DNA of 63,101 nt, counting the filler, from Reticulomyxa filosa (lineage: Eukaryota; Protista; Foraminifera), in the NCBI GenBank assembly GCA_000512085.1. It is 15 parts of 15 records of this genome, joined end to end, with 100 filler letters (N's around TTAATTAATTAA, not from the genome) between each part and the next. Parts side by side here need not be neighbours in the genome. Positions count along the whole stretch, not along the records: positions 12,794 to 21,379 come from ASPP01013687.1; 14 more parts are not named here. One strand, given 5' to 3'. The notes under the pieces were generated by a model. The model was given only the letters and a program-made list of their open reading frames with translations, was not told the DNA's origin and made no database searches. Shown one piece after another: positions 1,490 through 21,379 of this stretch (position 1 is its first letter; every line of letters starts with the position of its first letter). Position numbers and translations under genes: made by a program.

Positions 1490-2284
1490 ATGGTATATTT
1501 GTATGCGTACAAAATTGGAAATTCCGTCATAAATTTGGTTCTTTTTTATTGACAATAATATTACAGGGAAAGTTCGTTGTGAAAAAGCATCAGTTCCAAC
1601 AACAAAAAAAGATGATGAACATCAAAGCAAAGCTTAAAGCAGCAAACCAACTGAAGAAAAAAGTAGAAACTCGCACTCCCCGGACGGATGAGCAAGGCAA
1701 CAATGTGACCTCCAAGTGAACTTCGGTGGTTTTTTTTTTTTTTTATAAATCCATTTGTTTGTTTGTCATTCCTCCCCTTCTTTGATCTTTGTTAAAACCC
1801 CTGAATTTTTTTTTTTTAATGAAAGTTCAGACCTGAGCACTTCAACGAATTATTTTTTCGCCATAACACGGCATTGGGCCCCCCTTATCATATAATTTGT
1901 GATACAAACTTTTTCTATTATGCACGAAGAGCAAAGAAAGACATATTCCGTGAAATGACGCGAATATTGCTTAGTAAGTGCTATTTGTATGTAACTGACT
2001 GCATTATAGCTGAAGCAGAGAGATTGGGTCGCAAGTACAAATCAATGTTGCGAAGTATGAAAGATCCACGTATTCGGAGATTGAAATGTCAGCATAAGGG
2101 TACTTATGCTGATGACTGCCTTTGCGCTCGTGTGGAAGCACATCGTATTTATTTGGTTGCGACATGTGATAGAGATTTGAAGAAAAGGCTACGCAAAATA
2201 CCTGGAGTACCTATCGTCTTTGTTCAGGCCCATCGCTTCACTGTTGAAAGACTGCCCGAGGCCTACGGCGCTCCCAAATTTTAA
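1490..2284 (+). CDS. FCF1: rRNA-processing PIN-domain protein Fcf1/Utp24
   Basis: ATG at 1490 is followed directly by a GT..AG intron (1493-1566), then an exon giving MGK..., then a second intron ending at 1830. The last exon reads LFFRHNTALGPPYHIICDTNF...HKGTYADDCL...VATCDRDLKKRLRKIPGVPI. Confidence 0.95.
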
Positions 2285-2669
2285 TCTTCACATTTTTTTT
2301 GTTTTGGTCTTGCTTTTGTTTTTGTTTTTATTGCACTGTATGACAATTCAAACGCATCAATACTAAAAGTTCTATTCCAGGCTTTTCTTTGTTCCTTGCA
2401 TTTGCATTGTATGTTAAATGATTTTATTGCAACTTATTTTTTTTAATGGGTTATGGATATATTGGGGTCTCTTTTCTTTCTTTGCAAAAACACATTGGAA
2501 TTTTTACAATTGCTACGCATTCAATATTGAGTGGAAAAATTCACCCCAAAGCCAAGTTTATTTTAAATATGACAAAACAGACAAATCGATGCCATAATCA
2601 CAACACGACGCAATTTTCAGTGCTTGGTTGTAAAAATTTTGAACTTTTTTTGTCGGGAAAAAGATTATC

Positions 2670-2790
2670 ATGACCACGATACCAGAAGAGCTACAACAGC
2701 AAATCGAACAAAATCGTGTTGCGGCACTGGAAAGATACCAACTACGACGAAGGCGAAGACAAGTCCATGCTGCGGCATTGTTTAGTGTTT
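2670..2790 (+). CDS. 5' exon of a probable RPA32-binding-motif protein (SMARCAL1/TIPIN/XPA/UNG-type N-terminus); truncated by contig end
   Basis: ATG at 2670 reads MTTIPEELQQQIEQNRVAALERYQLRRRR, matching the ExxxxIExNRxxALxR RPA32C-binding helix. It is too short for the ORF track. Confidence 0.5.
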
Positions 2791-2992
2791 TTAGTTTTTT
2801 TTCCAAAGTGGGCTGACGACAATGTTTTTGCAAAACAGAGAAAGCCGTAAGCCTGAACAAGTAACCAATGTTTATCACGTTAAGTGTCATATAAATTTCG
2901 CACATTTTTTATTTTTGTAAAAGGGAACCACAAAGATTTGAAGCCCCTTTTTTTTTTTTTATTCAAAAAAAAACTAGCATTTTGTATCTTTG

Positions 2993-3092
2993 NNNNNNNN
3001 NNNNNNNNNNNNNNNNNNNNNNNNNNNNNNNNNNNNTTAATTAATTAANNNNNNNNNNNNNNNNNNNNNNNNNNNNNNNNNNNNNNNNNNNN
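2993..3092. other. Artificial contig linker (44 N + TTAATTAATTAA + 44 N), first of 14
   Basis: Identical 100-nt blocks at 2993, 6248, 7491, 12694, 21380, 22551, 28129, 32374, 42569, 49296, 50704, 54476, 56195 and 58561. TTAATTAATTAA places stops in all six frames. Confidence 0.98.
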
Positions 3093-3099
3093 AAAATAT

Positions 3100-3175
3100 T
3101 CAAATTTTTTAAACAATTAGGAAAGATGTAATGAAAACCAAAATCATATTTAAACTACAATTTGTAGATATTTTT
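3100..3175. repeat. Degenerate inverted copy of 5409-5487 (possible transposon terminal inverted repeat)
   Basis: The reverse complement aaaaatatctacaaattgtagtttaaatatgattttggtttt aligns with 5409 aaaaatatctacaaaccgtgtagtttttaaatatcattttggtttt. Confidence 0.55.
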
Positions 3176-5404
3176 ATGGTGCCATTTTGGGGTCAACTTT
3201 CTTTTCAATTATCAACCAAAGAAATTTACTTCAACTGAGCATGCTATACGAATAAAAATAGTCAAAATAGATCTCTTTGAATTTGGTTATTTGGAATTTA
3301 TCTTCATCAAATCTTTTTGTTAAAAAACAGCATCGATATTTCAAAGATATTCTTTTACAAAAGTATCTCCATGTTCATCAAGTAAAATAATAAAATAATC
3401 ATTCTATGATTATGAGTAAAGCTTGTAAAAAAAAAAAGAGAGTTATGGCATGCTATAAAATTTGGCCGACAAATAATTAGAAAACATTACAATAGATAGT
3501 CCTATTTTCTAGTAACATAGGGTAAGGCCCTAACAGTGTAAAGGAAGTTCCTGCGTGACTAAGGAAACCCCTTTTTTACAGCAACTTACTCATTTACCTT
3601 TTCTTCCAACTTCTCTTATTCTCTTGTTGTTTATATTCTTCTTTTATTTAAACTAATTTTGTTTTTGAAAGATTGCTTAAAGAGCAACTATTCATATTAC
3701 ACTTGACATTTCAGTCTAGACAAGCTAGTCAACTTCCTACAAACAAATAAATATTTTTCGTAATATTAAAAAAACTTTGATTAGAAAGTGACAAGTGCTT
3801 GTATTAGATACTAAACATAATTGAAAAAAAAACAATAATAAAAAGTTCAATTATTAAATCAATCTATGACTATAAAAAATGAATAGTCTCACATTTGTGA
3901 AATTCTGGCAAAAAATCTTGAGGTTGGGCATAGCTACAGCATTAAAGAAAACGAGTCGACTATTAATAATTTTAGAAATCAAAAAATATGTTAGTGGTCA
4001 GTTAAACATTTGAAAAAGATTTTAAAATACTGTAAATTTATTAATTGTATAATTTAAATGAATTTATTAAATTGCATCAACTATGAAAAATGTACAACAA
4101 CGCTTAGTGTAAAAAAAAATTGTATGTTCTTTATTGTGTAGCGATTACATATCTTTGTCAAATAATGTAACATAATAATACAGTAAATTTGTGCAGTGAT
4201 TTGTGTATTATGACTTGCAATGAAATAGTCTCATGTACTCATGTATCCACGCATCATCTATCAAAACAAATGAGATTGACAATAAATGCTTGTTCCATAA
4301 CTTTCTGCAAAAATATCACCATAAAAGTATTTTTGATATTTGAATCGTATGTAATTGACAATAGCTTTTGAACAATTGCAAAGTCGAAGATTCAATGGGG
4401 AGACTATCAAAATACAATAGAATGAATCTTATTTTGTATCTTCATTTCATTTTTGGTTAAAAAAGGCAAACAATTGAAGAACTATTGATAATAAATAAAA
4501 ACTCTTAATGATAACTTTCTTTTCACAAAATCTTTCATATAATATCTATTAATATTGCAATGAGAGTTGAAACAAATAAATACAAAAAGACGATATATAA
4601 GTGTTTCAATATTACATATGCCAATATTATTTGAAAAATAATGAAATAATTTTGAAATGCAAAAGTCTTTTTGTTGTTTTTTTTGCCTACAGTCAATATA
4701 ATCTGTTTGTCCAACAGAAAAATAATTTATAAAAAGTGTTCTGCATGTGCTTAATCTTGGACCACTAAAATATTAATTATAGTGAAACATTGTGAACAAT
4801 TAGCAAAAATAACAACGATAAGTTCTTTTACAAACTTAATTGAAAAGATATAGATAAAAATAGTTTAAATGATATATCATACGCATAATACACTTTGTTA
4901 AAAAATTTTGCTTAATTGCGTCACTTTTTTTGGTGTAATTTCAATTTGCTTTTCAATATCTTTAAATAAGTTAAAATTTTCATTAAAATTTATCATGTAG
5001 CATGTTGAACTTGTCCAAATGAAGGAAAAGGTGATCAAATATTATCTTAAAAATAAACTTTAGTTTTAAAATTAGAAATAAATATTAATGTTTTTTAAGT
5101 TTCTCATTTGTAGAAACTTCAAAATAACTGAGCTAAAACAATTTCATTTGCAACCACAAATGAGAATGTTAAATTTATGTTGTCAAAAAAAAAGAATGTT
5201 AGTGCAAAGGTATCCAGTTTGAAATCAAGAAATAAGCAACATTGTAAGTAATTTATTTAACAAAAGAATTAAATTACTTGGCTCATGTCATTTGTTTAAA
5301 AAAAAAGCAGACATAAATACAGTAAGAAAGTTGACACCTAAAATGCCACCTTATAGAGATAATTGTGTTTCTACATGAAAAAATAATATTTAATCAACAT
5401 TTTT

Positions 5405-6110
5405 TTTAAAAAATATCTACAAACCGTGTAGTTTTTAAATATCATTTTGGTTTTTTTATTAAGCCTTTTCAATTTTTTCAAAAATTTTATCTTTCATTTA
5501 CTTTAAAAAAAATTTTTTGTGGTTGCCTGAATATTATAAGATTTTGTTTTTTTAAAATTTAATTCAAGTTTACTGACGTGTTATATTTCCTTTTACTTTT
5601 TTAACTTCTGTATTATCTTTGGCATCGACTTTATTAAGGTTTCACAAATGTTTTTTATATTTTTTCACATTCTATTTCAAATTTGTTCCAAAGTTCTTCA
5701 GTGGTATTAAATGGTCCTTTTTTGTGAATCCTTGTATTTACTATCCACCAAAGATTTTTAATTGGATTTAAAGCAGGTAAATTTGGAGAAAATTCATTAT
5801 TTTATTTTTTTTTGTTTTAACATTTCATAATTTTTTCGACTTATGGCATGTTGCATTATCTTGCTGGAGAATCCAATCTCTTTATTTTCTAAGCAGAAAT
5901 TGACGATCTTTAGCATTTCGTCAGATAAAATTATCAATATTTACTCCATCTTACAAAAGTAACATGTTCCTAATGCTCCAAAACATGACTAGACTAAAAT
6001 GCTTCAATCACCAAATTTTGTTATTTTTGTTATAAGATTTTCATCTATTGGTTATCAATCAATATTTCGGCAACAAAATAATAAAACGATAATAATCAAT
6101 ATCGAACACC
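5405..6110 (-). mobile_element. Decayed Tc1/mariner (IS630-Tc1-mariner) DDE transposase relic
   Basis: Minus strand reads WILQQDNATCHKS (~5837-5875) and, after a stop and frameshift, SPNLPALNPIKNLW (~5748-5790). These match the QQDNAxxH and SPDLNPIENLW motifs, with the catalytic E changed to K. Boundaries approximate. Confidence 0.8.
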
Positions 6111-12871: not shown

Positions 12872-13625
12872 TTGAAATCAACAACGAATACATTAAATGT
12901 AAACGATCACAAAGTTTTGCGAATGCTCGGAAAGTTTACCTTTTTGACAATGCTTACATTTTTGTCGACATTGCTGTTAGCGAGTACCACGCTGGCTAGA
13001 ATAGGTATTCAAAGCAACAATCCCGATCCACTCTTTTATTTTGTCATCGCGATGTTTGTCACCTGTTCTGCACTCAATTCCATTGGTTTAGTGGATTATT
13101 TGTCACATGCGCTTTTTTTGTGTGCTTCGTAGCATCTTATATACATACATATAGGGTGTATGTGTTGTGTACGTTGCAACTATATACATTTGAACCACTT
13201 TAACATGTACGTGTGAGATACTTACATGCAAAAAAAAATATATAAAAACAAAAATAGTGTTTTTTATGCAGTTTAAGTTTGCCGATCCCGTGTACCGATC
13301 AATTTGCAAACCCTGTTATCTATTGTTTTATCGATTTGACACCACTAGTACGTTAAACTGGTTGGAGAAAGAACGCAAATTGTCTGACAGACAACGGAAA
13401 ATATTGGACCAAAAACGCAAGGGATCTGCTGGGAAGAGCGCCAAAAGCATCAATATTGTGTCGGCAGTATCCACAGAAGAGTTACCAAGACTGGACAGCA
13501 ATAACGACTTATTCAGTACCGTCAAGTCTGTTCCCGCAACTGTTGAGGTGAGTTCTGAAATAGTAGGCTCTCAGGTCGCCTTTGTTGGCTATAAACCTGA
13601 AGTGAGCTCGTCTGGACAGCCTTAA
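12872..13625 (+). CDS. C-terminal part of a multi-pass membrane protein (possibly 7TM-like)
   Basis: Two hydrophobic helices in ORF 12872..13132, a probable intron, then YRSICKPC and a Ser-rich cytoplasmic tail (ORF 13257..13625). Confidence 0.5.
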
Positions 13626-14596: not shown

Positions 14597-17500
14597 ATGA
14601 CAGGTATATAAAAATGATCGTTGATATTTTTTTTTGAGTCCACCTCTTTTTTTTTACTCACCTGTCCTCCAGAAAACTCGATAATCCGAGGTTGGAAGAA
14701 TGCACTCGCTGGATCAAATCACTTTCAAAAATATGGACTGGTGAGAGAAAAGTCAGGAGCACACGTATTATACCAAACAAAGTATTACACAGAGGAGCAA
14801 TTCAATGCAATCAAAAGAGACAAAATCCCAGTGTTATTTTTGTTTGGAGACAACGAGTTGGATAACAAGAGGAAAAAAAGAGTGGAAGCGAGGAGAGGCA
14901 CAGTAGGACAAGCGAGCGTAGCAGGGAAAGAAGGGTTTGAAGACATCATATCCTATGGGATCATCACCGTGTGGACTGCAGTTTCAAATGAAATGCGTTT
15001 TTTTTTTTAAAAAAACAAAAATAAATGAAAGAAAGATACAAAAGTCATTTCAACAATGTCATAAAGTTGTCATTTTGTGTTTTTATCTTTGCAATGAAAT
15101 ATTGGGGAGAAAGAATCACGCAATTGAAGTGAAAATCAAAACATGGGAAAGTGCATTCAAATACTTACTTTCACGAATCCAAGAAGGGTATAAACAGCTT
15201 TTTTTTTTTTTTTTTTTGAAATGTCAAGAGTATAGCAAATTGAAATTTTACAATTTTGGATTGATCAAAAAAAAAAAAAAACAGAGTGACGATTGTAGTA
15301 CCTTCTCCTTCTGAAAAAGAGATTAAATCCAATCAACAAAAATTTCTTGATTCAGTTACATTGCCCTATTTGTTTAGGGAATTCTTTGATTTTGTTGATT
15401 GATCACACGTATATATAATGCGTAATGCTTCAATAGCACGGCAAACAAGTTATATTTCACTCAATGGGCACTGGTATTGCAGGCGCTCCTTTGATTGATT
15501 TGCAAGTGTTACAGTCATTCCTCGATCTTTTGGTTGGTTTTCTCTATTCTCTTTTTCTCCTTCTTCATTCTTTTTTAAAAGACAACGGAGACGGAATTGT
15601 CATTGTGCAATGCAACTCGAAACAAATAGGAACAACAAATTGTGGACGCGAGACGAATCAATTGTGGCCTTTCGCAGTCAAAAAATGAGAAAATGTAAGT
15701 GACAACAGCCCAATGCAATATGAATGCACGTAGCATTTAACATGCATGCACAACAGCTAATGTACAAATGAAAGCTGTGTGTGTGTGTATGTTGGTACAG
15801 TGAATTTGAGCAACAAGACATAAAGAACTCGATGAGCAACAATGAAAAGACTAAATCGAATATCGACGTGCACAGTAAACAAAACACAGAGCTGCTCAAA
15901 TTGTTGGAAACAAAAGATCTACAAATCGACCAATTGCGAAAAGGATTGGCTCAATTGAAAAGTAACAAACAAGACTCTGTTTCAATATACAAAATACATT
16001 GTTCAAAATTGTCTTTTTCCAACAAAAATCAATTGTTTTTGTTTGTTTGAATTTTGAAAAAGGTATGTATACGACGGCATTGCAAGATCACACAAAGCAA
16101 CGTGAAGAACTGCGAAACGAGCTGTCGATAACACTGAGAAGTCAAGAAAACAACAAAATAAGTGAAAATGAAGAAAAGAAAGAAAAGGAACAAGAGAATG
16201 AAAAGATGAAAATGGCACAAGCAAAAAAAGAAGAAGAAGAAGAAGAAGCAGTGAAAAAGGAGTTGGATATACTAAAAGCGAAATACCGTGCACTGGAGCA
16301 AGAAAAGACGCAGTGGACGACAAGTGAGACAAACCGAATGCAAAACGAGGAAAAGAAATGGAAGCAGGCGAATCACGGCTTGCAAAAGCAAAAGGATGAC
16401 TTAAAACAGGAACTTGATAAAGTGACGCAACAAAAGAATCAGTTGATGCAAGAAAAGAATCAATTGGCACAAGAAAAGAATCAATTAACACAAGAAAAGG
16501 ATCAGTTGGTAAAAGAAAACAAAAAACTCGAACGAGAAAAGCAGAATCTCGAACGACAGAACAATGCTCTAACACAAAGCAATGAGAAGCTCGTGCAAGA
16601 GAACACTCAGCTGTCGCAGAACAATCACGACATAAAGAACGAGGACAACAATAAGAATGACGACATGAATCAAAAGCAGTTGCAAGAGATCCAGCGACTT
16701 AGACAAGAGAATAAGAGCCTTGTGGAGGAACACAAACGACTCAATACACTGTTGGCAGCGACTCCAGATCACTCCAAGCTCGTACAAGAGAACCAACGAC
16801 TTTGTGAAGAACATCGACAACTTGTGCACGAAAACAATAGCTACAAATCGCTGTATAGTATTACCAGGACATTGAAACAAAAAAATGATAGTTTGATCCG
16901 ACAAGTGTTGGATTTGAAACAAGAAAATGAGAGACTTACTTTGTTTCAATCTACACACACATTGTCTTCTAATCCTTTGTCTGTTATCAACTCTCCTACT
17001 TTCAATGTCCCCGCTTCTTCTTCTTCTTCTCTTGATGCAAGTTCACCCTCTGTCGACACAGATGTCACTGACTCGCAGCTCCTCGTGACAACCAGCGTCG
17101 TCACTCCAGGGAATGACCCTTTGCCAGTGGCAGCCAAGGCAAAATTGGATGACAATGATGCCCTTAGTACTGATGCACAGCCAAATGGTCATGACAACGA
17201 CAATATCAATCCACTTGTTTTATCAGCTCACGTCAGACAAGAGGAACGATCCTCGCCCGCAAAGCAACCGATTGCTGCAGATGCAGTCGCAGGTTTTTTT
17301 CTTACTCTTATCCATTGTGTGTGTATGTGTGTGTGTGGAAGAAAAAAAGAACATAACAAACATTGGACAGCCAGTGAAGTAGACCGGAAAGAACCCCAAA
17401 TGTTTTGACAATTCGTCTCCTTTAGTTTTATTTGTACAGATTGTAAATGGATTAATTTGTTGGACACACGCAATATCAATAAACACACATACAACAAAAG

Positions 17501-18626
17501 CCAAGATTCAATCATTCAATTGGAATTTGACAAATGGAATACAATATTCACAAAAGAAGCGAGACGATGCCCTTTATTTGTTTGGTGCCATCCTTCCTCC
17601 AAAAATCCACAAATACAAATTCTCTACAAACCGTCTTTATCGACGCAAGTCCACACTTTGGATGTTGGTGCAAAATTTACGTATCAAAACGAAAAAGACA
17701 CTTTCGAAGTCACCAAGCTCACTCCCACGACCGCCACTGAGACAAATCTTCGAACCAATCAAACCTCGTCAATTTTTTCCAAACAAAAAGGTTTTTATTT
17801 TATATTTGTATTTATTTTTCCCATCTACTCCAAAATCACGTACGTATGTATGCATAAGGCATTACAAATACTCCACCTTTGCCCACTTGGTGGTCGTACG
17901 ACTCTGTCGATACATCGGATCACTCCGTTCCTTGGCGTGATGTCACGGATGTCAAGACTGAACGACTCTCAGATGCACTGGAACAAGTGAAAACGCATAT
18001 CAGAGACAGTCACATTCAAACCGCTTGGCAGATTCAAAACATGGAGTTGTGGGCAGCTTATTGCTCCAACAAGTTGTCTTGGACCCATCATCAATTGCGT
18101 TCTGTCATCACTTTTGTGTTTGTGTATACAGCCATATTGCAAGTACTTTGTCTTTTTTTTATCTTCTTATGTAGCAAAGGAAAAAACAAATGAAAAGTAT
18201 CTTTGGCTCGGGACAAACGGCGATCAATGGAAGGACATTTGTACCCAAGTTTTGTTCCAATGAAATCCAAGCTACTTTTTCATTTTCAACACAATCCTTT
18301 TTTTTGTTGTCAAATCAATTACAATCAAGGGATTCCAAATCGATCAATATAACGAAGGCATGCATGGGCTGTATTTCTATCAAACGCCCGATCAAGCCTT
18401 GCAACATAAAGGCAGCGCAACTTCTGGAAAATTCCGCCACCTAATTTATGCTATTGTCCTGTGTGGAGAAAGTGATATTGCACCCTCAAGTACTCAGCAA
18501 CGGCCTAACAAACCCAACACATCAATCCCATTTGAGACATTGGTGGACGATCTGAAAAATCCAACCTTCTACGTTGTTGGTTTCCAAAACCAAGCATATC
18601 CAATTTTTTCATTTCAATTCCAATAA
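14597..18626 (+). CDS. Multi-exon protein: phage-type macro-like module + coiled coil + WWE-like segment + divergent PARP/ART catalytic domain
   Basis: Mostly phase-consistent GT-AG exon chain starting at ATG 14597. It links LFLFGDN..RGTVGQA..SYGIIT..TIVVP..MGTGIAG to the coiled-coil ORFs (15781, 15999) and then to LPTWW..IQNMELWAAY..NEKYLWLGT..ICTQGF..HGLYFY..VLCG..VDDLKNPTFYVV..QAYP. Confidence 0.8.
16428..16520 (+). repeat. 21-bp coding tandem repeat (heptad QEKNQLx, ~4 copies)
   Basis: caagaaaagaatcaattggca-like units encode QQKNQLMQEKNQLAQEKNQLTQEKDQLV. Confidence 0.85.
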
Positions 18627-19662
18627 TTAAAGACGAATATTCTACGTGAAGAAAAAAACTGTGCAAGATTACAAATAACATAAATGAATGTCCTTTTGTT
18701 TTTTATTCGATTAGAGGAACCAAATAAAGTAATCATTTTTGTGTGTTGGTTGTTCAACATTCAAATACAATTCTTTTAACGTGTAGGACTTAGAAGTAAT
18801 CAATATTGGTAAAAGAAAGGATTATTACTTTTTTTTTCTCAAGAGAATGTTAAAATTTGACATTGTTAAAACGAACTCTGTTTTTTCTCTATCGTCGCAA
18901 AATGCGAATAATTTAATAAAAGGTGTATTGCACGTGATATTCATTATTCTGGAAAATTGGCCAAAGCATTAAATTATTCTATTGCGTAAAATGTCCTTCT
19001 AATAAGGGATATAATAGAACACGTAGCTATTGTAGAGAGATGCAAGAAAGAGGGTTTTCTAAAGATTATTGGAGAAAAATGAAAGTGAATTTAAAAAAGA
19101 AAGAATAAAGAGTGTTCTCTCATTAAAGAGTTTGATTATTACAACTCTGGAGTCAGTTTGACTCTACACTATTGAAGTTTATGTTAATATGTATCTGTAT
19201 AAGTTCGTAATCAATTGATTTTCGAATTTATGAGACAAGACTGGAACAAATGTGAAGGTTTGAGGTATAGAGAATACACATATAATTAAAATTTTGTCAA
19301 AAGCACAGTATCATATCATATGGTTCATTTTTCGTTTTGGTTCTGTTCAATGGAAACGTGCTATTCCTTTTTTCCTCTTGCATCGTGTCTTGAAACACCA
19401 TAAAATCAAACTTTTCAAACATTTTAATTTATTTATGAAATCACATTTTTTTCTAAAATAATATCCACAATAAAAAAATGCAAATTTTGATTTTGGCGCG
19501 TAGAAGAACATCCTTTATGAAAACAAAGGATGAACGATTTTGAAGCTATGCAACTTCAATGGATGCATTTGTTGTGTTGAAGTGTGCTTGGGTCTTGGAA
19601 AGAACCTTTAAAAAGGAACTTTTCATGCAACTTCGCAATATAGAGAAATTTTTTCATCCAAT

Positions 19663-21379
19663 ATGACTTCTTTGCTGTCAACTCATGGACTTGATAATAA
19701 TGAGGACGAGCTAAAATCAAAAGAAAAAATAAAACGGAACTAACTAACAACGACAACAACGATAACAATGATAACAACGATAACAACGACAACGATCTAT
19801 TTAGTGATATAACATTAGATTTAGTAACAGCAACAAAAGAATTGATAGCATTACGCGAAACAAAAGGTAATCCATTTCCATCCTTTGTAAAAATAAAAGA
19901 GAAACCTCAATTGGTAAGTATGGTAGTAGTAAAAAGAGAAAAAACACAATGGGAATGGAGAACAATAATAACACACGTAATTCATCCAATGGGAACATTT
20001 CGAATAGCATGGGATTCATTTGTATGGCTATTATTATTGTATAGTTTGATTGAAGTACCATTTACATTAGCATTTGGAATTCCAACAAATTTATTTACAA
20101 CATGGTATGGTATTGTTAATTTTTGTATTTATGTTGTGTTAATGTTGGATATAGTATTGAATTTTCGAATGGCATATTTTAATAATTTTGAGCGTGGATT
20201 TCGAAGTGAAATTGTAACAAATCCAAAAAAGATAGCAAAAAAGTTAAGTAGAATAATATAAAATGAATAATATAAATAAATAAAAATAAAATATATTTAC
20301 ATCATATTATATAATAGATATTTAAAATCATGGTTTATATTTGATATAGCAGTATCATTACCAATTGAATTTATATTTAATAATAGTGATAATAATAATG
20401 CAACACCAGATTTACTTTTATTAAATAAAATATTTCGTATTCAAAGAATTTTTCGATTAAAAAAATTTATTCAATTTTGGTCACATTTTAAAAAAAATAG
20501 TTTACGATTTCGACGATTTTCAAATGATAACCGTGTATCTCTAATAATATCATTTTTAATGAATATACTTGTAAATCATATTGCTGCATGTATTTGGTAT
20601 GCATTAGGAAATTCAAGTAATCATTGGACTTGGATAGATGAACATGGCTGGCGTGAGAAAGGTATATCATTTTTATATACAAAATCATTATATTTTACAG
20701 CAATTGCATTTTATATTACTGGTTATGGTGATATTACACCTGTTAATCAAAATGAAATGGTATTTACAATGTTATTAATGTTATTAGGATTATTTTTATT
20801 TAGTTATTTTGTTGCAAGAGCAGCTATGTTAGTAGTAGTTGCTCGAGATACACAAAAATTAAATGAAAAAATGAATGAAGGATATGAATTTTGTCGATTA
20901 AAAGGTCTTTCTGATTATGATTCACAACAAGTATTAACAAATATTGAATATGCTTGTCGAAGTGATACTTTTGATGATGATTTACGTATTTGGCCAACTT
21001 TACCTCGACATATATTATTAAAATTAATTGGTGATGAAACAACATCTAAATATATTCGTCCTGCACGTATTATTGTTAAATCATTATTTGGTAAATGGAT
21101 TGATGATGATGAAATATTAGGAAGATTAGCATTACGAGTTAAATCAATATTTTGTATGGATTATTTATTTAATAAAGGAGATTATTTTAAAGCAATATAT
21201 ATTCATAATGAAGGATATTGTGTAAAATTTCAATATTATTCACGTAGTCGTTATCGTGAATTTACTGCAAGTAATGCTCATTTAATGAAACAAGGAAAAA
21301 AAAAATTAAAAGTAGAAGATGTAATGGGTGGTATTAAGATTCGAAAAGGAGATGTATTTGGAGGTATTATTATATATAT
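19663..21379 (+). CDS. Cyclic-nucleotide-binding-domain cation channel (KCNH/HCN/plant Shaker-like); 3' end truncated
   Basis: VIHPMGTFRIAWD, DIVLNFRMAY, an intron at ~20243-20318, YLKSWFIFD, S4 KIFRIQRIFRLKK, NHIAACIWY, pore GYGDITP, and a CNBD start LFNKGD..IY..G..KGDVFG. Start ATG at 19663 needs a 1-nt fix in an A-run near 19725. Confidence 0.9.

Follow-up and report, generated by a model that had tools for sequence, protein, structure and literature searches.

In the macro-PARPs of animals (PARP9, PARP14 and PARP15) an N-terminal alpha/beta module is paired with a C-terminal PARP domain of clade 3, and in PARP12, PARP11 and PARP13/ZAP the PARP domain belongs to a WWE-PARP cassette. In some of these proteins the triad that binds nicotinamide adenine dinucleotide (NAD) is altered, being Gln-Tyr-Thr in PARP9 and Tyr-Tyr-Val in PARP13/ZAP, and both are thought to act as non-catalytic binders or scaffolds. 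A related set of domains is found in phages and giant viruses, where SLOG-Macro-NADAR-DUF4326 fusion proteins have been predicted to act against the ADP-ribose signals of the host (Iyer et al. 2022, PMC9503650). A 2014 survey of PARPs, which included the foraminifer Reticulomyxa filosa (Rhizaria), described other unusual partners of Rhizarian clade-3 PARPs, DUF7831 not being one of them (PMC4245714). Here we analysed a stretch of 63,101 nucleotides joined from parts of the R. filosa draft genome (GCA_000512085.1), called the window below and used for all positions unless stated otherwise. The exons at 14597-18626 very probably form one gene for one protein of ~990 residues, contrary to the GenBank annotation. 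The protein would join a divergent homologue of the phage and bacterial domain DUF7831 to a coiled coil and a PARP-like domain. We put the probability of this explanation as a whole, one 12-exon gene with ADP-ribose-related roles inferred for its parts, at about 0.6.

The original prediction, made from the sequence of this locus, had rested on the motif string VLYQ..LFLFGDN..RGTVGQA..YGIIT..VTIVVP..MGTGIAG, which is indeed present in the exons assigned to it (Table 1), and its proposed kinship of the N-terminal module with DUF7831 was borne out by profile comparison. Searches with the window were run exon by exon, and database proteins served as queries otherwise. Against Pfam, PHROGs and NCBIfam the individual window exons gave no match for the module, and because they are too short for profile libraries, three transcriptome-derived proteins of another foraminifer, Bolivina argentea (P0006, P0129 and P0007), were used as proxies. 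The module of P0006 (residues 140-310) aligns to positions 6-106 of the 118 in the Pfam DUF7831 profile (PF25176), with 22.8 bits and E 8.9e-5, and PHROG 2072 matches the Bolivina module at 1.1e-4. When foraminiferal and phage alignments were compared by hhalign, the match reached a probability of 96.6% (E 6.5e-10, 119 columns) with FGDN, R-x-G-x-GGQA, G-I-x-T, v-v-P and GTG in register, and window exon 2 alone gave E 3.9e-5 against the DUF7831 profile. A language-model feature search with the Bolivina module placed DUF7831 clusters nearest (0.93; 24 of 30 hits). Because of the hhalign, Pfam, PHROG 2072 and language-model results, the identification of the module as a divergent DUF7831 homologue can be regarded as well supported.

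The phage side of the family was reached through a weak tblastn hit, which led to QJA43078.1 of Phaeobacter phage MD18, a bona fide DUF7831 protein (151 bits) with the pattern YLFGDN, R-Q-G-L-GGQA, G-V-A-T-K, V-I-P-E-D-G-L-GTGLS. It has hundreds of relatives; among the matches listed, all carry PF25176. Another phage hit from tblastn (H1) was rejected as an unrelated open reading frame (ORF), glycosyltransferase-like by its sequence. We compared the phage-invariant DUF7831 residues (G-D-N, G, Q-A, R, N, G, T-K, P and G-x-G-x-S) with the window, which keeps FGDN, R, GQA, G-I-I-T, P and GTG. In the window, Val stands for the second Gly of GGQA (where Bolivina has Gly) and Ala for the Ser; E-P-N, the lysine of T-K and the aspartate of D-G are also replaced. 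Some of these observations weigh against the assignment: the window exons have no Pfam DUF7831 match of their own, the 22.8 bits of the Bolivina module lie below the 27-bit gathering score, and the foraminifera replace the phage-invariant Lys of A-T-K, the E-P-N and the Asp of D-G-x-GTG. Because phage-invariant residues are replaced, the activity of the foraminiferal module may differ or be lost. Foraminiferal and phage modules have no more than some 60-110 columns in common, with poor conservation, and in a tree the foraminifera would be expected as a single long branch.

AlphaFold2 modelling of a phage DUF7831 protein from 93 sequences gave a confident structure (predicted local distance difference test 94, predicted template-modelling score 0.88) in which four strands alternate with helices. 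When this model was compared with 48,161 chains by VIA-align, macrodomains made up 13 of the 14 best matches, including those of Poa1p, TARG1, nsP3, DarG, PARP14 and PARP9, among others. Fusion partners point in a similar direction. In phage clusters of the ESM Atlas, DUF7831 is fused to DUF4326 (96 members) and to a YAcAr-type SLOG domain (152 members), and in foraminifera to WWE-PARP, giving three independent fusion contexts in the NAD/ADP-ribose network; DUF4326 is a rhodanese-phosphatase-type domain (Iyer et al. 2022, PMC9503650). Mainly because three independent fusions fall within one biochemical network, and also because the confident model most resembles macrodomains, DUF7831 may bind or process a ligand derived from ADP-ribose or NAD. 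We consider this putative ligand an evenly balanced proposition, which follows from context more than from fold.

The macro-like fold itself is the leading candidate for DUF7831 and is not established; we would give it slightly less than even odds. Several results count against it. Foldseek with the phage model found nothing in PDB at E <= 0.001, and its top rows were dual-specificity phosphatases with template-modelling (TM) scores of ~0.3. A Pfam scan of 29 DUF7831 members at E <= 10 gave one chance-level ThsA_Macro hit (E 0.26), and a PDB profile search with DUF7831 found no macrodomain. The macro-fold relation that had been suggested in the original prediction found backing in the VIA-align ranking but not in Foldseek or in the Pfam and PDB profiles. 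The 'A1-like' family that it named corresponds to the A1S_2505 phage family, a structural neighbour of DUF7831 in the ESM Atlas (TM 0.60-0.66); we found no sequence-level match between the two, the NCBIfam scan being empty. PADLOC and NCBIfam gave no match for DUF7831 or for the Bolivina domains.

The strongest alternative accepts the single gene but takes DUF7831 for a generic three-layer alpha/beta domain (for example, a methylase-like fold, a phosphatase-like fold or a protein-interaction module) unrelated to macrodomains or ADP-ribose, so that the fusion to a PARP would say nothing specific about its ligand. We regard it as unlikely, since such a domain would not be expected to meet the NAD/ADP-ribose network in all three of its independent fusion contexts, to yield a high-confidence model whose top matches are nearly all macrodomains, or to place its conserved motifs where nucleotide-binding sites have them, in Gly-rich loops and at the ends of strands.

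The proposed gene has 12 exons and 11 introns on the plus strand; the introns are all GT-AG and 68-147 nt long, and the G+C content is 0.41 in exons vs 0.30 in introns. Joined, the exons give 2,973 coding bases, i.e. 990 codons plus stop, with no internal stop and with GenBank's two genes in frame. The splice sites named previously (introns 14604-14672 and 15188-15284, an intron end at 15629 and the acceptor AG at 17857-58) are all present and in frame. The junction near 15000-15110, which had been left undecided, is best placed as intron 14981-15113, because the resulting 39 residues from G-I-I-T to the proline of v-v-P equal the count in Bolivina P0006, and because an ORF of an environmental metagenome contig (L006; Joint Genome Institute 3300030740, Ga0265460_10186038) keeps the register of the exon 2-3 junction in the part that it covers. 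For exon 4, the donor at 15355 was preferred and that at 15394 rejected on the spacing relative to L006, because exactly two query residues of the second L006 ORF (ORF2) bridge the proposed intron 15355-15436. For exon 10, splicing from a donor at 18104 to an acceptor at 18179 is an alternative. With Bolivina proteins as tblastn queries, exon 2 was matched at 6e-11, exon 12 at 0.03 and exon 5 at E 0.001-0.003 (P0129 and P0007). The L006 ORFs matched exon 2 at 9.7e-29 and exons 4 and 5 at 1e-11, with 72% identity of ORF2 over exon 5. The coiled coil that had been predicted is present and comprises ~290 residues rich in E, K, Q, L and N and almost without Pro or Gly; a 21-nt (heptad) tandem repeat lies at 16423-16519 within exon 8.

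Table 1. Exons of the proposed DUF7831-PARP gene and GenBank gene models on the same contig (window positions)
Feature	Position	Strand	Size	Content
Exon 1	14597..14603	+		ATG ACA G; start shared with RFI_17810; P0001 begins MTENSII
Exon 2	14673..14980	+		First half of DUF7831-like module: VLYQ, FLFGDN, RRGTVGQA, YGIIT
Exon 3	15114..15187	+		Long helix of module, NHAIEVKIKTWESAFKYLLSRIQE; spacing identical to Bolivina P0006 and L006 ORF1
Exon 4	15285..15354	+		VTIVVPSPSE strand and foraminifer-specific insertion; L006 ORF2 tblastn covers 15295-15351
Exon 5	15437..15532	+		GKQVIFH strand and GTGIAG loop (last DUF7831 motif)
Exon 6	15630..15694	+		Linker, in frame; canonical donor GTAAGT at 15695
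Exon 7	15801..15961	+		Start of coiled coil; holds ATG 15832, the 823-aa GenBank start, in the same frame
Exon 8	16063..17292	+		~290 coiled-coil-like residues, then Ser/Asp/Pro-rich low-complexity linker
Exon 9	17440..17790	+		Directly upstream of PARP domain; position of WWE in PARP11/12/14-type proteins
Exon 10	17859..18098	+		N-terminal part of PARP-like domain, IQTAWQIQNMELWAAY; order and pattern parallel Bolivina and PARP12
Exon 11	18175..18248	+		NEKYLWLGT; Leu (CTC) at NAD-binding histidine position
Exon 12	18330..18626	+		GLYFY (triad Tyr kept), PTFYVVGFQNQAYP (Phe at third triad position), stop codon
GenBank RFI_17810	14597-15402		219 aa	
GenBank second gene	15832-18626		823 aa	
GenBank third gene	19530-21353	+	522 aa	

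GenBank instead models two genes here; the splice chain proposed above is deduced from genomic sequence and from relatives. On that model a small DUF7831-like protein (RFI_17810) would precede a separate coiled-coil/PARP-like protein starting at 15832, and the in-frame chain would be fortuitous; short forms of the family do exist, since an R. filosa paralogue (L005) and contig L006 end after the coiled coil without a PARP domain. We consider the two-gene arrangement improbable. The 219-aa model includes translated intron sequence and stops inside the domain, before the GTG loop, so that exon 5, which holds the final conserved motif of DUF7831, belongs to neither model and lies between them. 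Exons 5, 6 and 7 connect in frame into the frame of the 823-aa model itself. In all relatives the module leads directly into the coiled coil within a single ORF. On L006, contiguous ORFs span exons 2+3 and exons 4+5 plus the coiled coil with identical spacing, the exon pattern recurs in R. filosa on the contigs of paralogues L004 and L005, and the Bolivina proteins P0006, P0129 and P0007 bear the full fusion, in which the module shares a single chain with a coiled coil, WWE and PARP. The fusion recurs in a second foraminifer, and the ORFs that had appeared separately in the window are probably parts of one gene.

The C-terminal exons agree with the PARP12/14-type domain that had been proposed. 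As a phmmer query against PDB, exon 12 found PARP15, PARP12, PARP14 and ZAP weakly, at E 0.01-0.26, and exon 11 (30 aa) gave E 0.015 and 15.2 bits against Pfam PARP (PF00644), a weak match from a single-exon query for a cut-off of 26.7. Exon 10 carries the pattern I-Q-N-x-x-L-W-x-x-Y, which we take to be typical of clade-3 PARPs of the PARP12/14/15 type. Exons 2, 9 and 10 found no match when used as sequence queries against PDB. The Bolivina domain reaches 44.6 bits with Pfam PARP, above threshold, and matches PARP12 at 2.3e-22 as well as PARP15 and PARP14. When the two foraminifera are aligned, NEKYLWLGT of R. filosa falls under NEKWLYHKT of Bolivina, which in turn aligns to LFHGT of PARP12, and GLYF and PTFYVV fall under GTYF and PTIFVI. 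The triad is His-Tyr-Ile in Bolivina, as in PARP12, and Leu-Tyr-Phe in the R. filosa copy, which therefore departs from the His-Tyr-(Glu/Ile/Leu) NAD-binding pattern.

Judged by this alignment, the C-terminus appears to be a domain of the PARP12/14/15 type in which Leu has replaced the NAD-binding His. Because the His is lost, as in PARP9 and PARP13/ZAP, a loss of NAD binding or catalysis is fairly likely in the R. filosa copy. The label 'pseudo-PARP' given to it earlier therefore seems apt for the R. filosa copy alone; the family in general probably consists of active mono-ADP-ribosyltransferases, because the Bolivina relatives keep His-Tyr-Ile. The WWE-like stretch of the original prediction fared less well and tells against this part of the proposed architecture: neither Pfam nor PDB searches detected WWE (PF02825) in exon 9, nor did a BLASTP comparison with the WWE region of Bolivina. 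The nearest language-model clusters of exon 9 bear a WWE label at 0.78, which is below the usable level. In Bolivina, WWE repeats lie directly upstream of the PARP domain, the WWE of P0007 scoring 22.4 bits with Pfam against a cut-off of 21.1.

A further objection is that the Leu codon lies one base from a His codon in a draft assembly, but it is quite unlikely that the R. filosa copy is a functionless, decaying paralogue or that the Leu is an assembly error in an active enzyme, since against the draft state of the assembly (CTC differs from CAC by one base), the presence of at least four paralogues in R. filosa and a divergence of the PARP-like domain strong enough to leave the 823-aa product without a recorded Pfam hit stand 990 codons intact over 11 introns, without stop or frameshift, and changes at other NAD-site positions (Phe at the third triad position; His at Tyr+11). 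Because several NAD-site positions have changed, long-term non-catalytic evolution fits better than a single-base error.

In the explanation that we favour, the protein would run from a DUF7831-type alpha/beta domain through a coiled coil of ~290 residues, a low-complexity linker and a stretch at the WWE position to a PARP12/14/15-type fold. The ancestral foraminiferal protein would have been a clade-3 mono-ADP-ribosyltransferase with WWE readers, whose N-terminal module may have bound or trimmed an ADP-ribose-type ligand (as reader or eraser) and whose coiled coil may have served oligomerisation, a protein functionally parallel to the animal macro-PARPs without being a member of their family. 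After loss of the His, the R. filosa copy would most likely act as a non-catalytic binder or scaffold, by analogy with PARP9 and PARP13/ZAP.

A broader scenario is conceivable, although we hold it to be rather doubtful in its entirety. DUF7831 would be a minimal macro-like reader or eraser of ADP-ribose or an NAD-derived nucleotide, which large alphaproteobacterial phages may use against host immunity based on NAD or ADP-ribose; a foraminiferal ancestor would have captured it and, independently of animals, fused it to a WWE-PARP mono-ADP-ribosyltransferase, and the R. filosa copy would later have become a non-catalytic sensor or scaffold.

DUF7831 was not mentioned in the literature that we searched, and for this family without known function the fusion to a PARP would be the first functional hint. 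Its conservation in two foraminifera amounts to a 'Rosetta stone' link which, taken with the phage fusions, is complementary: PARP, DUF4326 and SLOG partners together lead to the concrete hypothesis that the ligand of DUF7831 is ADP-ribose or an NAD derivative. The hypothesis extends to the family as it occurs in phages, where matches were found in 102 of the 50,697 records searched, most of them infecting alphaproteobacteria (Caulobacter 41, Rhizobium 26). For the heterogeneous clade-3 PARPs of Rhizaria, DUF7831 would be an additional domain partner, and if the macro-like reading is true, the macro-PARP design would have had a second, independent origin. At the level of annotation, the split R. 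filosa gene model (RFI_17810 and the 823-aa gene) would be corrected.

In our searches DUF7831 was seen in tailed phages, bacteria and metagenomes, and its divergent module only in foraminifera. This distribution makes horizontal acquisition by foraminifera plausible; a role in defence, which had also been suggested, is speculation. In the phiCbK-like phage CcrRogue (L008), the DUF7831 gene (5001-5450 of that record) directly follows rIIA/rIIB, and the matches in CcrPW and CcrColossus border on an annotated rIIB gene. The gene of Phaeobacter phage MD18 (L001, 1501-1890) is located two genes upstream of a CCA-tRNA nucleotidyltransferase, and tRNA genes lie in the neighbourhood in phage Phosso. 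None of these neighbourhoods (phiCbK-like, MD18, Phosso) gave a functional clue for DUF7831. The DUF7831 protein of Pseudomonas phage phiPto-bp6g (L007, 1453-1836) was labelled by its depositors 'hypothetical protein DDB_G0286989', a Dictyostelium discoideum identifier. The Dictyostelium homologue hinted at by this label was not found within the length range searched, and no paper on it was found; if such an amoebozoan homologue exists, DUF7831 is not limited to foraminifera among eukaryotes.

An exhaustive phmmer search with exon 2 against 1.84 billion representative proteins returned only seven at E <= 0.001 (E 2e-62 to 1e-4). They are the truncated RFI_17810 model itself (P0001), the R. filosa paralogues RFI_14723, RFI_20226 and RFI_10572, the Joint Genome Institute metagenome protein P0003, and P0006 (953 aa) and P0007 (528 aa) of Bolivina argentea from the EukProt set; P0129 (985 aa) is a Bolivina cluster mate of the last two. 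A word-based search with the Bolivina module found nothing beyond one further Bolivina fragment. The module thus occurs in at least three further R. filosa paralogues, whose gene models look similarly truncated, those that were read running into non-homologous sequence. Two of the loci are at 1609-3119 of ASPP01017256.1 (L005) and at 3063-4634 of ASPP01010706.1 (L004), the latter running off the contig end. The L005 copy is seemingly a short form, consisting of the module and a short coiled coil without a PARP domain, and downstream of it a kinase gene with EF-hands lies on the opposite strand. On L006, positions 3-1059 hold an intron-free module and coiled coil in two overlapping ORFs (3-392 and 346-1059) related by a frame shift, the second of which ends after its coiled coil; it represents either a relative without introns or a spliced transcript that carries an indel.

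Within Bolivina, P0006 differs from P0129 and P0007 in a segment of ~20 residues, LQNQIYFYNGKQIIFH, at about residues 255-275 of the module region, between the v-v-P strand and the GTG loop; isoforms or assembly variants may account for the difference. The segment is present in R. filosa, encoded across the boundary of exons 4 and 5. Residues 1-110 of P0006 and P0007 form an extra N-terminal region, PH-like by eye (..F.L....F.C....C.EW...L), for which Pfam reported no PH domain and which is absent from the R. filosa gene. An upstream window ORF (13257-13625) was considered as a 5' exon or PH-like piece and was discarded, since it shows no similarity to the N-terminus of the Bolivina proteins, its stop overlaps AATAAA, and it lies ~970 bp upstream of the ATG at 14597.

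The part of the window that carries the gene is the whole 8,586-bp contig ASPP01013687.1 (12794-21379), on which GenBank calls three genes; on the GenBank record, neither the RFI_17810 product nor the 823-aa product has a Pfam hit. The 522-aa gene downstream encodes an ion channel unrelated to the DUF7831-PARP gene, its largest ORF matching Ion_trans_2 at 5.5e-9 and Ion_trans at 4.4e-6, and it contains an Asn/Asp-rich (NND)n repeat at ~19728-19799. Unannotated by GenBank, the region 12872-13625 (+) resembles the 3' end of another gene, with a hydrophobic exon (12872-13132), a last exon after an acceptor at ~13270, a stop at 13623-25 that overlaps AATAAA, and a G+C content of 0.40-0.42 vs 0.27-0.29 in the spacer up to 14597. 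Within the DUF7831-PARP gene, intron 3 has homopolymer runs of T19 (15199-15217) and A15 (15267-15281), intron 8 a (TG)n microsatellite (17316-17337) and intron 6 a shorter TG-rich run (15776-15795), and several introns start with GTTT.

Set against described systems, the gene falls among the multidomain clade-3 PARPs, and its interest lies mainly in the functional lead that it gives for a phage domain. Its module shares with DUF7831 of phages and bacteria (PF25176; PHROG 2072; e.g., QJA43078.1 of MD18 and gp298 of Caulobacter phage CcrRogue) the order of secondary structures and the motifs N-terminal Y-Q, F-G-D-N, R-x-G-x-G-G-Q-A, G-(I/V)-x-T, v-v-P and G-T-G-(L/I). The phage and bacterial proteins either stand alone, at ~125-150 aa, or have DUF4326 or SLOG domains as fusion partners. 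The foraminiferal module differs in its partners, a coiled coil and WWE-PARP, in its insertions of ~10 aa after FGDN and ~20 aa before GTG, and in lacking E-P-N, the lysine of T-K and the aspartate of D-G. With the macro-PARPs the R. filosa protein has in common the layout of an N-terminal alpha/beta module, in R. filosa a putative ADP-ribose binder, and a C-terminal clade-3 PARP, and with PARP9 the loss of the catalytic His; the nearest solved relatives of its PARP domain are PARP12, PARP15 and PARP14. In contrast to the macro-PARPs it has no significant Pfam Macro hit and a long coiled coil separates its modules; the resemblance is one of architecture, not of membership. The WWE-PARP cassette of PARP12, PARP11 and PARP13/ZAP is matched by the WWE repeats and His-Tyr-Ile PARP domain of Bolivina, the degenerate triad of R. 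filosa being ZAP-like, but CCCH zinc fingers are absent, the N-terminal partner is new, and WWE is undetectable by sequence in the R. filosa copy. Finally, phage DUF7831 occupies the slot of the Macro and NADAR partners in the viral SLOG-Macro-NADAR-DUF4326 fusions (PMC9503650), whereas in R. filosa the domain is part of a cellular eukaryotic protein and sits beside a domain of the ADP-ribose writer type.

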